64,000 nt of DNA from Utricularia gibba (lineage: Eukaryota > Plantae > Magnoliophyta), in NCBI GenBank assembly GCA_002189035.1, contig CM007991.1, positions 3,534,001 to 3,598,000 of the forward strand, read 5' to 3'. The notes beneath the pieces were generated by a model that saw only the letters and a list, made by a program, of their open reading frames with translations, was not told the DNA's origin and made no database searches. Both the position numbers and the translations under genes were made by a program. Positions 18,962 through 24,231 of the stretch are shown one piece after another (within the stretch, counting starts at the first letter, position 1; each line of letters begins with the position of its first letter).

Positions 18962-20516
18962 ATGAGTTGTTTCTCATGCTTCTCCTCCAAGCGGAAGACG
19001 TCGAGGCATGGCGTCCGGGATAAAGCTGTACCTCAAGAGCCGTCTCCGCCGCCGTGTCCGCAACCCCGAGGTTCATCTACGCAGCAGCACCATCCCACTG
19101 GTAAAAGGGATCCCTTTAATTTCTTAATCACGTTCGTTTCTGGGCCTGATAACCTTCACCCCTTTTTAGAACATCCGGGGACGAGTGGCAAGCCCCTTGA
19201 AAAAGAAAACAATAACAACATTGCTGCTCAGACATTCACCTTCAGGGAGTTAGCATCCGCGACCAGGAATTTCCGGCCAGAATATCTCCTCGGAGAGGGT
19301 GGATTCGGCCGAGTTTACAAGGGCCGTCTCAGTAAAACAGATCAGGTTACCTGTCTGAATCTTAACCATTACATTGGAATTGATCATAAAACCAGGCATC
19401 ATTTTTTCACCGTCTCCAGACAGTGGCCGTGAAGCAATTAGACCGAAATGGCGTGCAAGGAAATCGAGAATTCCTCGTAGAAGTACTGATGCTTAGCCTC
19501 CTGCATCATCAACATCTTGTAAACCTGATCGGATATTGCGCCGATGGAGATCAACGCCTCTTGGTTTACGAATACATGCCTCTGGGATCTCTCGAGGATC
19601 ACCTTCTAGGTAAATCAATCATACTTCTCGTTAACTACTACATCCCTGTCTTGACATTTGCACATTTTTACGCCATCTTCAGACCTACCGCCAAACCAGG
19701 CTCCTTTACCATGGTTCACAAGGATGAAGATCGCCCTCCATGCCGCCAAGGGGCTGGAGTACTTGCACGATAAAGCGAATCCTCCGGTCATCTATCGCGA
19801 CCTGAAGTCTTCAAACATCTTACTTGACAGAGAATACAATGCCAAGCTATCAGATTTTGGGCTAGCAAAGTTGGGGCCAGTCGGAGATAAATCATATGTA
19901 TCAACCAGAGTAATGGGTACATATGGCTACTGTGCTCCTGAGTACCAACGAACAGGGCAACTCACCATGAAGTCAGATGTTTATAGCTTCGGTGTTGTTC
20001 TCCTGGAGTTGATCACCGGGAGGCGGGCCATCGACACCAGACTCGACCCTGAACAACAGAACCTGGTTGCATGGGTAAAAGAAAACAAAAGCAACAGCTA
20101 GTTGAGTTACCTGCTCTACTCCACTCTTCTGATAATGTCATCATCACCAGGCTGATCCAATTTTCAAGGACCCCAGCAGACTCCAGGAGCTATCCGATCC
20201 ACAACTCAAGTCCCAATTCCCAAAGAAGAGTTTCAATCAAGCAGTTGCTGTAGCAGCAATGTGTCTGCAAGAGGATGCTTCTGTTCGGCCTCTGATAAGT
20301 GACGTTGTTACAGCGCTGAGTATGCTTCCAGAGGAGCAGCCTGAAACAGGCCTCACACGGTCAGCCTCAACACCAGCATTTTCAGTGATGGAGAACCCTG
20401 AGACCCACAACGACACAACAGCCATGGAACGACAGAAGGCTGTCGCCGAAGCTATGGCATGGGGCGCCCACTCGAGGAGCAACAGCGTGCGCAGGAACCA
20501 AGTGAGGAAGTGTTGA
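18962..20516 (+). CDS. Receptor-like cytoplasmic kinase VII (PBL25/26-like)
   Basis: [10 protein letters not shown]-terminus (putative palmitoylation Cys). Kinase motifs [34 protein letters not shown] and [17 protein letters not shown]. Five exons in phase. Confidence 0.93.
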
Positions 20517-20578
20517 GTTTGGAGAGTGTAATCTGAATATAAGTGAATTTTGAATTTAATGACAAATATCAGCCACTT

Positions 20579-20651
20579 GGGGATGTAGCTCAGATGGTAG
20601 AGCGCTCGCTTAGCATGCGAGAGGTACGGGGATCGATACCCCGCATCTCCA
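20579..20651 (+). tRNA. trnA-AGC: tRNA-Ala (anticodon AGC)
   Basis: GGGGATGTAGCTCAGATGGTAGAGCGCTCGCTTAGCATGCGAGAGGTACGGGGATCGATACCCCGCATCTCCA (73 nt). Anticodon arm CTCGC-TTAGCAT-GCGAG, and a T5 Pol III terminator at 20672-20676. Confidence 0.97.
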
Positions 20652-20890
20652 AAGCTCTTCACGGTTTAGTGTTTTTGCTTATTCATCATTTACTTTTAAG
20701 GCCAGCATGCCCATTTCATCTAGTAAAAATTACTGTTGTGGTGGGTCATTTAATTTGTTCATGGTAAAAAGGTAACCGCAAAAGGGTAAAGATAATACAA
20801 CCAATCCTAATGATATGAAATGGGCGGTTCAATTGTGGACATTCCGCCATCCTCTGGCTTCATAGCTCAGAGGGACCACCATTCCTCTCA

Positions 20891-22263
20891 TCAGAGTCCT
20901 GCAGCATCACCATGTTCGATATTATGGTTTAAAGGCTCCAAATCCTCATCAGCCTCATTTCTCTCTGCTACTGTTGTTGCATCAAGCTTATCATTGTCTG
21001 GGATTTCATGGGGTTGCACAGCAGACATCACATCATTCTCACGAATTAAGTTATCATTATCCTCTGGTTCCACACGGCTTTCGATTTCGTTGTCTGAGTC
21101 ATTGTATAATGTGCTCTCAATCTCGCCTCTCTTCTCTTTTTGCTCCAGGCATTGCATTCTCCTTCTCAAGTCCTCAAACTCCCTCTCCATTAAGAACAGT
21201 CTTTCCTTCAAGATCAAGTTCTCCTCCTCCAGTTGTGCAATATGGCTATCATGGTCATCTACCCGGTTCTCTAATACATAATGCTGATCCAGAACAGAAG
21301 GGTTGTTCTTGGTTGGGTCGTAGATCATCTCAAACCGGCTCAAGTCATGGTCGAACCTCCGGGTCACTTCCACATGCCCCTCTCCATCGCTTTCACTAGA
21401 ACTTCCTCCATCTTCTTCTTCATCCTCATTAGTCTCCATTTCATGTCCCTGTGGTCTCAACCTAATAAACCCTTTCATTGATCCATATCCATCAACTCCC
21501 CATTCTTCCTTTGCCATGTCCACTACAACCTCTCGAGACGGGGAGAAAATAGGTGTGGGAATGATAGCAGGTGTCATTGGAGAAGGAGAAACCAATGGCG
21601 CAATACCCCCACTCTTCTTCGCCCTGATTATGAAGGAAGTAGTATTCCGAGGAGCAAAGGGTGCAGACATGTCATCACCAAGACGATAATTACTATTCCC
21701 ACCCATGCCCATATTAACAACACCACTTTTATTGAACTTCTTCTTCTGGAAGTATCTCCCTGTCTTCAACCTGTTATGATGCTGCAATTCACTTAGAGAT
21801 GGAGGCTGATAGCTAGTGATTTCCGGATTTCCCAAACCACCGACTTCCATCATGTTTACATTTCCAGGAAGGGATCCAGCCATTAGCGCTTTCAGCTGAT
21901 CATTTCTCCTTTTCTCTGTAAGATTACTACTCTTCTTCCCCTTCCAGTTATTCCTTGGCCCCAAAGACTTCTTGAAACCTGTCAAAGATGGTTTCACACC
22001 CCCAACTGCAGATTTGCTGCTTTGAAATTGTGATGGAGGCGGCCATACGCCATAGGATCGATTCATCGGAGGCATCTGCACGTCCTAAACAATAAGAATA
22101 CACAACTACAGAATACTTTGAAGGAAATTGATCAATTTTTTGGATTCTAGGGGACCACCTGAGGTTGAGGTTGAGTCATCTGGTTCATGCTCATCAAATT
22201 GTGGTTCATGTTCATTAATGGCTGCTGCTGCTGTTGGTTCATCATCACTCCCTGCTCTATCAT
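20891..22263 (-). CDS. PRL1-interacting factor A-like coiled-coil protein, 2 coding exons
   Basis: Exon 1 MIEQGVMMNQQQQ...QPQPQ splices to DVQMPPMNRSYGVWPP. Conserved-looking blocks APRNTTSFIIRAKKSGGIA and EEWGVDGYGSMKG, an acidic tract and a C-terminal coiled coil. Family name from memory. Confidence 0.75.
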
Positions 22264-23049
22264 CTCACTCCTACACTGAAAAAATAAGAACAAATTAGAT
22301 TGCACAATTCTGAAAATTGAAATGAAACAGCGTACCAGCTTCAGGATTCAAAATCTTCAAATCGCACCCCAAGAACACGTAAATACACGCACCTCAGACC
22401 ACAGAAGGAGAAATTTCACACATAAATCACTTCGAAGAGCTGAGAATTCAAGATGGAAGCAAGAAGAATCTCAAAGAACAACACGGTCCAGGCGAGTTCA
22501 ATCCGTCGACCAAACTCTCCCTAGTTTCGTTATGGTTAACCGCCCCGAGAAGCGGGCGCTAGGGCAGCTATATAGCCCAGATGTCCGGGTCCGGGTCGGC
22601 TTGGTAGACAAAAGGGGCGAACCTATTCAAAATTACAGATTTTAATTTATTTAGTTTTAAAAACAAAATATCACTCTTTTGTTTCATGTATTTGGGATTA
22701 AATATAACATTATTTTAAATATATATTTATAAAACTCACAATTTTAATTTTTACCATAATTACAAATAAATTAATTAAATATATTATTAATTAAATTATC
22801 ATATTAAACAGAAGATATATATACTCCATGCCAGATATTTGTGAATTTAATTAAATATTTTGATTTTCCAAAACTTAGATATTTATTTTCATAATAAATA
22901 TAAAGACGAACGTTTGAGGAACCCCCAAAGCTCACTTCGGCATCATTATTGGTAATAGATGACAACTCCTTCCAGAGTTCATATGGCGTGGACAAGATAA
23001 GGCGGCAGAGCAGAGGCGCGGCGGCTCCGGTGGGTTTAGCGGCGGCGCC

Positions 23050-24198
23050 TCAGAATTCGTTCTTGTACCAGTACACGCCCTTGCTCGGGGAATGCTCCTC
23101 CTTCTCCACGTACAGGCATTCTCTGGCCTCCCTCCAAAGCGCCTTGTGGACGGGGGTGGGATCAAGCTTGTAGTAAGAGCCAAGGACCGGCTTGATGGCC
23201 CTGGTGGCCTCCATGGCATGGTAATGGGGCATCGTGGAGAAGAGGTGATGCGCCACATGTGTGTCTGTGATGTTGTGGAACACCTTGTTCAGCACCCCGT
23301 AGTCCCGATCCACGGTGGCGAGAGCTCCCCGGAGCCAATCCCACTCGGAGGAATCGTAGTGGGGGAGGGCCGGATGGGTGTGCTGCAGGTAGGTGATGAG
23401 GACGAGGAAGCCATTGACGACGAGCAGGGGAGCTCCATAGATGCAGAAGAGCCAGAGGAAGCCATTGGAGATAGCAGCACGGTAGAGGGTGAATACAGCA
23501 GCAAGAAGGCCTGCATCGGAGAGGAAGATCTGAAGCCGCTCCCGGTCGTTGTATATAGGGCCGTAAGGGTCGAAATGGCAGGCGAAACGATCATACGGCC
23601 GACCGGAGACATTGAACGCCAGATAGAGTGGCCATCCGAGAGTGAGCTGGATGACAAGGCCGAGAAGACGGCCTGGTGGATTGTTCATATACTTGGAGAA
23701 CCAGGAGATGTCTGACTTGGGCTTTGGGACAAACACCTCGTCTCTCTCGAGGGATCCGGTGTTGGAGTGGTGGCGCCGGTGGCTGTATTTCCAGGAGAAG
23801 TAGGGAACAAGGAGGGAAGAATGGAGGATGAGGCCGACAGTGTCATCAACCCACTGATAGTCACTAAAAGCATGGTGGCCACACTCATGAGCAATCACCC
23901 AAACTCCGGTGCAGACACAGCCTTGAACAGCCCAATAAACTGGCCAGGCGATGTAGATGTAAGGAGCAGGAAGCAGATGAATGTAGGTCACTGCAATGTA
24001 GTAGAGAGCAGCTACTATAACAAGATCATGAACCACATAGGAGAAGGATCTGATGAGTGATCTCTGAAAGCAGTGGGGTGGGATGGCTTTCTTAATGTCT
24101 CCCAGAGTGAATGCTGGCTTATCAACAGGTGCTTTCTGCAGGGCATTCTTCTTCAGTTCATCTTCTGAAGATAGAGCCACGCGTCCACCAGCGCCCAT
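23050..24198 (-). CDS. FAD2: Microsomal omega-6 (delta-12) fatty acid desaturase, intronless CDS
   Basis: MGAGGR start and three His boxes HECGHH, HRRHH and HVAHH; C-terminal GVYWYKNEF. Confidence 0.97.
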
Positions 24199-24231
24199 CT
24201 CCACTTGCTGCCCCTCGCCCAATTCAGCTAG

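Follow-up and report, generated by a model that had tools for sequence, protein, structure and literature searches.

Animal HEXIM1 and HEXIM2 (Pfam PF15313) are 7SK-dependent inhibitors of P-TEFb (CDK9-cyclin T). They contain an arginine-rich basic region, which binds 7SK RNA and lies upstream of the inhibitory motif, and a C-terminal coiled coil, which binds cyclin T. The level of active P-TEFb, which in animals is set by the HEXIM-7SK particle, is one of the main controls on their gene expression. In plants the kinase is CDKC with CYCT1, and it plays a part in flowering time, the circadian clock and virus infection. To our knowledge, neither a P-TEFb inhibitor or reserve complex nor a 7SK RNA is known from plants.

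[quoted passage not shown] 2024, bioRxiv 10.1101/2023.02.19.529146), and CDKC;2 is the plant P-TEFb CTD kinase (Chivu et al. 2024, bioRxiv 10.1101/2023.02.19.529146; PMC12973403). HEXIM orthologues are found in animals and their unicellular relatives, and HEXIM-like sequences occur patchily in CRuMs, glaucophytes, cryptophytes, Picozoa, stramenopiles and others; the same eukaryote-wide survey has no Chloroplastida among its HEXIM files and infers that HEXIM arose close to animals (Chivu et al. 2024, bioRxiv 10.1101/2023.02.19.529146).

The gene described here is located on the minus strand of the window, i.e. the whole stretch of 64,000 nucleotides of Utricularia gibba DNA that was analysed. 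It has three exons and is spliced and polyadenylated, according to the sequence and public RNA contigs. The features of the gene are:

22393..22520, minus strand: exon 1, 5' untranslated (spliced contigs of runs X1, X2 and X5)
22276..22392, minus strand: intron 1, 117 nt, GT..AG, inside the 5'UTR (joint 22275/22393 in three runs)
22159..22275, minus strand: exon 2, with the ATG at 22263, coding for a Q/M/N-rich N-terminus of 35 residues (sequence, ORF list, contigs)
22076..22158, minus strand: intron 2, coding, 83 nt, GT..AG, phase 0 (joint 22075/22159 in three runs; sequence)
20760..22075, minus strand: exon 3, with 394 further codons, the stop codon at 20893..20891 and the 3'UTR (ORF and contigs)

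The CDS (22263..22159 plus 22075..20891) starts with the ATG at 22263, ends with the final base of the stop codon at 20891 and codes for about 429 amino acids. As the coding intron occupies 22158..22076, the protein reads from QPQPQ directly into MPPMNR at this joint. Spliced mRNA pieces (22520..22393, 22275..22159 and 22075..~20760) were identified in public contigs of three runs from two studies, and a contig from a third study (run X6) ends with a poly(A) tail near 20754, its loose poly(A) end placing the poly(A) site near 20754-20781. Given spliced mRNA in three runs and a poly(A)-tailed contig, the gene is real and transcribed. The X5 and X6 contigs differ from the window in several single bases (20930 and 21061-22490), and the X6 contig also has one extra A behind 20930, within the region coding for the C-terminal tail; all of this may reflect allelic or strain differences or a contig error.

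Three neighbours of the gene were recorded. A tRNA-Ala (anticodon AGC; ARAGORN, Rfam 60.3 bits) is located on the opposite strand at 20578..20652 (+), about 100 nt past the poly(A) site. The ORF pieces at 19658..20516 (+) correspond to the C-terminal half of a serine/threonine protein kinase, with motifs such as DLKSSNILL, stop just before the tRNA, and are probably exons of a gene for a receptor-like cytoplasmic kinase. An intronless ORF of 390 amino acids at 23050..24222 (-) has three histidine boxes (HECGHH, HRRHH and HVAHH) and, judged from the ORF list alone, looks like a FAD2-type omega-6 fatty acid desaturase.

The original prediction had quoted, in order, the basic segments PRNNWKGKK and GRYFQKKKFNK, the motif APRNTTSFI, an acidic tract (EDEEEDGGSSSESD) and a coiled coil (IAQLEEENLILKERLFLMEREFEDLRRRMQCLE). 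All were found in the long minus-strand ORF 20891..22081, which contains all of the motif segments, and the position given for APRNTTSFI (21655..21629) agrees exactly with the sequence. Residue numbers used below, e.g. P145, start from position 22084, as in the alignments. The segments of the protein are:

21932..21958, minus strand: basic tract 1, PRNNWKGKK, with a W-K-x-K core that is invariant in angiosperms (ORF, angiosperm alignment)
21728..21811, minus strand: Y-x-P-P...L-Q..N-R-L-K helix, followed by basic tract 2, GRYFQKKKFNK (alignment, AlphaFold)
21614..21661, minus strand: HEXIM-type motif P-F-A-P-R-N-T-T-S-F-I-I-R-A-K-K (conservation, hhalign, HMM)
21455..21502, minus strand: family-specific block W-G-V-D-G-Y-G-S-M-K-G-F-I-R-L-R, with G-S-M invariant across Streptophyta (alignment)
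21386..21427, minus strand: acidic tract EDEEEDGGSSSESD, net charge -9 per 20-residue window (ORF, charge scan)
21320..21352, minus strand: D-H-D-L-S-R-F-E-M-I-Y block, a possible counterpart of HEXIM R-D-F-x-E-x-Y-E (alignment)
21143..21262, minus strand: C-terminal coiled-coil helix with L-E-E-E-N-L-x-L-K-E-R-L (AlphaFold pLDDT 80-92)
20894..21142, minus strand: variable acidic C-terminal tail (alignment, charge scan)

Within the motif (APRNTTSFII, 21655..21626) the Pro, Asn, Thr, Thr and Phe of HEXIM are kept and Tyr is replaced by Arg. In the AlphaFold model the family core is mostly disordered (mean pLDDT 51), with the exception of a short helix before the motif and the confident terminal helix; the former, at core residues 58-72, is the sole N-terminal segment predicted to be helical.

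The protein belongs to a family annotated as 'PRLI-interacting factor A' (E = 5.9e-138; 64% identity to Sesamum and other Lamiales; 817 hits) and carries every conserved block of that family. An exhaustive profile search collected 227 clusters at 50% identity, and those whose taxonomy was looked up, among the best 150 of the 227, were all streptophyte. Members are known from angiosperms, the conifer Cryptomeria, Physcomitrium, Sphagnum, Marchantia (two distinct protein clusters), Chara, Closterium and Mesotaenium. The core is highly conserved in angiosperms and includes W-K-G-K-K, Y-K-P-P-x-L-x-E-L-Q..N-R-L-K, the motif block, an SP-rich stretch, Y-G-S-M-K-G-L-I-R-L-R, the acidic tract, D-H-D-L-S-R-F-E-M-I-Y and the coiled coil. 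Across Streptophyta only seven columns are invariant: the A, P and N of the motif, G-S-M, and one leucine of the coiled coil. A144, P145 and N147 (A-P-x-N) are unchanged in 22 streptophyte sequences, and the motif takes the family-wide form P-x-A-P-[R/Y/F/L/C/H]-N-[T/D]-[T/S/N]-S-[F/Y]-[I/L]-[I/M]. The pattern AP.N..[S/T][F/Y] is present in about 100 of the 109 cluster representatives and the exact APRNTTSF in 58 of them; some mosses have the animal form A-P-Y-N, and in mosses the equivalent of Thr205 is Asp. Across streptophytes the motif is thus better conserved than any other part of the protein, and conservation of PRNT, on which the original prediction depended, is borne out. The family name was found only in lists of candidate genes. 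The literature search yielded neither a functional study of the family nor a paper documenting an interaction with PRL1, and searches for an Arabidopsis gene identifier and for CDKC/CYCT interactome data for the family returned nothing usable. The family consists of mostly disordered, nuclear-type proteins, is streptophyte-wide, and is annotated but uncharacterised.

The plant family was compared directly with genuine HEXIMs. The reference set consisted of 19 proteins retrieved with a HEXIM from a metagenome locus (L010, see below), all of which match PF15313 and 18 of which carry the animal APYNTTQF. With hhalign, the streptophyte-wide alignment matched these HEXIMs over 19 columns with 85.7% probability (P = 5.5e-6), and the narrower angiosperm profile with 37.7% (P = 3.4e-4). 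A greedier extension with 109 plant sequences gave a collinear alignment of 183 columns from the basic tract to the coiled coil (76%, P = 2.3e-5), in which the per-column confidence is low outside the motif. The hhalign score of 45.3 compares with 14.4 ± 2.6 for 120 column shuffles (maximum 24.9) and with 21.7 for the reversed control. The plant-family HMM scored 15 of 18 independent PF15313 HEXIMs at 16.5-22.4 bits (per-sequence P = 4e-9 to 3e-7) and reversed HEXIMs at no more than 0 bits; a second stretch paired the L-x-E-E-N-x-x-L-K coiled coils in the right order, at a non-significant score. The reciprocal HEXIM HMM performed more weakly, with a maximum of 12.8 bits, P < 1e-3 for 29 of the 109 plant proteins, and 5.9 bits for the protein of the window, reversed plant sequences reaching up to 4.3 bits. 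The residues that match between the two families are exactly those that are invariant in both.

Searches that were not directed at HEXIM named the same family. Among 24,736 Pfam families, HEXIM was the sole one matched outside the coiled coil, and for two members it was the only family reported. PF15313 matched 18 of 26 members (9 of 16 angiosperm cores and 9 of 10 divergent streptophytes) with E = 0.0024 to 3 and 8-19 bits, so that all matches remain below the gathering threshold of 29 bits, which none of the 26 members reached. These matches start at the helix and basic tract 2 segment (21728..21811; profile positions ~11-37) and always join the segment that ends with the motif to profile positions ~11-53, once to 90. 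The protein of the window on its own gave no HEXIM match in Pfam at E <= 10, its single-sequence searches of Pfam, NCBIfam and PDB yielded coiled-coil noise only, and a PDB search with the angiosperm core profile yielded no HEXIM1 chain at E <= 10. In the ESM Atlas, no named family came closer to the whole protein than HEXIM (0.78), which also headed the list for the motif-free residues 215-320 (0.75); scores below 0.9 are leads only in this resource, and 0.75-0.78 is reached by shuffled proteins about one third of the time.

These results bear on the explanation that the likeness is accidental, i.e. that an unrelated, fast-evolving, disordered coiled-coil protein mimics HEXIM with a short peptide and low-complexity charge blocks. 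Every Pfam HEXIM match is sub-threshold, the Atlas scores lie within the range of shuffled proteins, the reciprocal HMM scores are weak, and basic, acidic and coiled-coil segments are common in disordered nuclear proteins. Chance would nevertheless have to account for an hhalign score of 45.3 where the best shuffle gave 24.9, for 15 of 18 independent HEXIMs scoring 16-22 bits with the plant HMM when none rises above 0 bits in reverse, for HEXIM being singled out from all of Pfam as the only family outside the coiled coil, and for a match made up of the very residues that neither family varies. We consider this explanation improbable. As far as sequence comparison can tell, the resemblance of the motif to HEXIM exceeds chance, because A-P-x-N is invariant, unbiased scans name HEXIM, and the profile tests beat their shuffled and reversed controls.

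The similarity is nevertheless narrow. The significant plant-HEXIM alignment spans only about 17-20 columns, so the profile similarity to HEXIM that the original prediction had asked for is present at the motif but is confined to some 20 residues there. When the motif was cut from both alignments, the N-terminal basic parts displayed no similarity in hhalign (P = 0.53), and the ESM Atlas found nothing for the N-terminal part without the motif; the suggestion that the basic region is the counterpart of the 7SK-binding region of HEXIM thus finds no detectable similarity in its favour. Rfam found no 7SK RNA in the window. The C-terminal parts without the motif aligned coiled coil to coiled coil (P = 0.002; score 25.8 against 12.2 ± 2.2 for shuffles), and since the reversed control scored 18.5, this signal is mostly that of a generic coiled coil. 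The coiled coil predicted earlier is modelled as a terminal helix, but its likeness to that of HEXIM is barely above the control. A pairing of the block D-L-S-R-F-E-M-I-Y with HEXIM R-D-F-x-E-A-Y-E was confined to an alternative hhalign alignment, which is weak (P = 0.036), and the plant equivalent of HEXIM Tyr271 is not securely aligned.

The order of the segments was the central claim of the original prediction, and order and approximate spacing do agree; beyond the motif, however, the agreement is one of charge blocks and landmarks. Relative to the motif, the protein of the window has its basic tracts at -24 to -120, the acidic tract at +77 to +96, D-L-S-R-F-E-M at +103 and the coiled coil at +141. 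In two genuine HEXIMs the basic tract is found 25-64 residues before the motif, the acidic tract at +29 to +95, D-F-x-E-x-Y at +59 and +85, and E-N-x-x-L at +128 and +169. The acidic net charge is -9 at residues 221-240 of the protein of the window and -7 and -8 in the two HEXIMs, a likeness in composition only.

The narrowness of the match suits a different reading, in which the motif likeness is real, by descent or by convergence, and the plant protein acts on another partner, either a different kinase or a non-kinase protein, for example in a PRL1/Prp19-type splicing complex, as hinted by the database name, or in nuclear transport. Significant similarity is limited to the motif, the basic region does not resemble the RNA-binding region of HEXIM, the annotation refers to PRL1, and the family's own invariant YGSM.G.IRLR block and SP-rich segment, which have no counterpart in animal HEXIM, suggest additional or different interactions. 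Against this reading, the ten-residue match P.AP.NTT.F[LI][IM] is far longer than typical convergent linear motifs, it is exactly the kinase-inhibiting element of HEXIM, and the orthologous kinase is kept in plants. The shared ordered architecture and the protist intermediates with N-terminal features of HEXIM type, described next, also fit a conserved function. We regard another partner as somewhat unlikely, though it deserves to be kept in mind.

Protist proteins provide forms between the two families. INTERMEDIATE forms were found in about 20 published protist HEXIM-like proteins with APRNTTQF (supplement of Chivu et al. 2024). Like the plant proteins, these have arginine in the motif and are below or near the Pfam threshold, and at least one has F-G-S-M-H-G-V-L-K-K-P-L-V-R, which by eye resembles the plant Y-G-S-M-x-G-x-I-R-L-R. 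Unlike the plant proteins, they keep the W-[K/R]-P-Y...T-W-E-E-K block of HEXIM. A metagenome scan for back-translated APRNTTQF gave 11 loci. One of them, L010:3139-4065 (-), encodes a genuine HEXIM (PF15313 E = 1.1e-29, 103.9 bits, full model) with Arg in place of the canonical Tyr (APRNTTQF), and the R form therefore occurs within bona fide HEXIMs. Four others (L001, L006, L007 and L008) encode HEXIM-like proteins that are sub-threshold in Pfam, and the comparison of plant and protist profiles covered these four ORFs. The L006 protein has H-G-S-M-F-G-F at the same place as the plant GSM block and scored 22.5 bits with the plant HMM and 30.6 bits with the HEXIM HMM; a word-index search with it found itself alone. 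L001:2422-2775 (-) and L008:4830-5153 (-) are located on contigs of 18% G+C and code for short, very basic proteins. Their motif, A-P-R-N-T-T-Q-F-I-I-R, is near the plant form, their source is an AT-rich eukaryote, and they scored 24-25 bits with the plant-family HMM against about 15 bits with the HEXIM HMM. Because the plant-HMM alignments to L006 and L008 end after the motif, the 'GSM.G' likeness is a visual one only.

The preferred reading, to which we give an even chance, is that the plant family is a very distant relative of HEXIM with the kinase-inhibiting peptide as its core and is a candidate inhibitor of CDKC-CYCT. The plant protein would dimerise through its coiled coil and use the same coiled coil to dock on the T-type cyclin CYCT1. 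The PRNT motif would then occupy the catalytic cleft of CDKC;1/CDKC;2, which in plants corresponds to CDK9, and plant P-TEFb would thereby be kept in reserve in an inactive state. If HEXIM is a guide, the basic and acidic tracts might shield one another, a state that would end once the basic tract is bound by a partner, which could be an RNA. We infer docking on CYCT1 and a block of CDKC by PRNT because the motif contains residues that HEXIM1 needs for inhibition and because CDKC;2 has been retained in plants. A further-reaching proposal is that P-TEFb control of the HEXIM type did not originate in animals (holozoans) and was already present in the common ancestor of animals and green plants, if not earlier, with the streptophyte descendant sequestering CDKC-CYCT under licence of a 7SK-like scaffold RNA; we rate it as doubtful.

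The literature search found no paper on a link between plants and HEXIM or on a plant protein inhibitor of P-TEFb. A family that has the inhibitory peptide of HEXIM as its most conserved element is a credible candidate for the missing brake on plant P-TEFb. If this is true, the origin of the HEXIM control layer moves much deeper in eukaryote evolution and the search for a plant 7SK-like RNA is opened. If it is refuted, the family would instead be a striking example of how a motif of ten residues, together with the complete order of segments, can evolve twice.

Plants do have small, largely disordered inhibitors of cyclin-CDK complexes that use short conserved motifs, namely KRP/ICK and SIAMESE/SMR. 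They target the cell-cycle kinases CDKA/CDKB and not the transcriptional CDKC, and they are not known to have a sequence relation to the family described here, a PRNT motif or a coiled coil. They do resemble it, in its candidate role as a CDK inhibitor, in being largely disordered and in relying on a short conserved motif.

Animal HEXIM is the closer comparison. Its W-K-P-Y...T-W-E-E-K block is unrecognisable in plants, which have Y-K-P-P-x-L-x-E-L-Q instead, and it does not have the conserved insert of about 55 residues that follows the motif in plants (SP-rich stretch and YGSM.G.IRLR); the YGSM block is without a clear counterpart in animals. In other respects the two families are alike: both are mostly disordered, and both have a basic tract, the motif, an acidic tract and a terminal coiled coil with L-x-E-E-N-x-x-L in the same order. 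The motif itself, A-P-[Y/R]-N-T-T-x-F-[L/I]-[M/I] (P-M-A-P-Y-N-T-T-Q-F-L-M in animals, P-x-A-P-R-N-T-T-S-F-I-[IM] in plants), is nearly identical and is the conserved core of both families.
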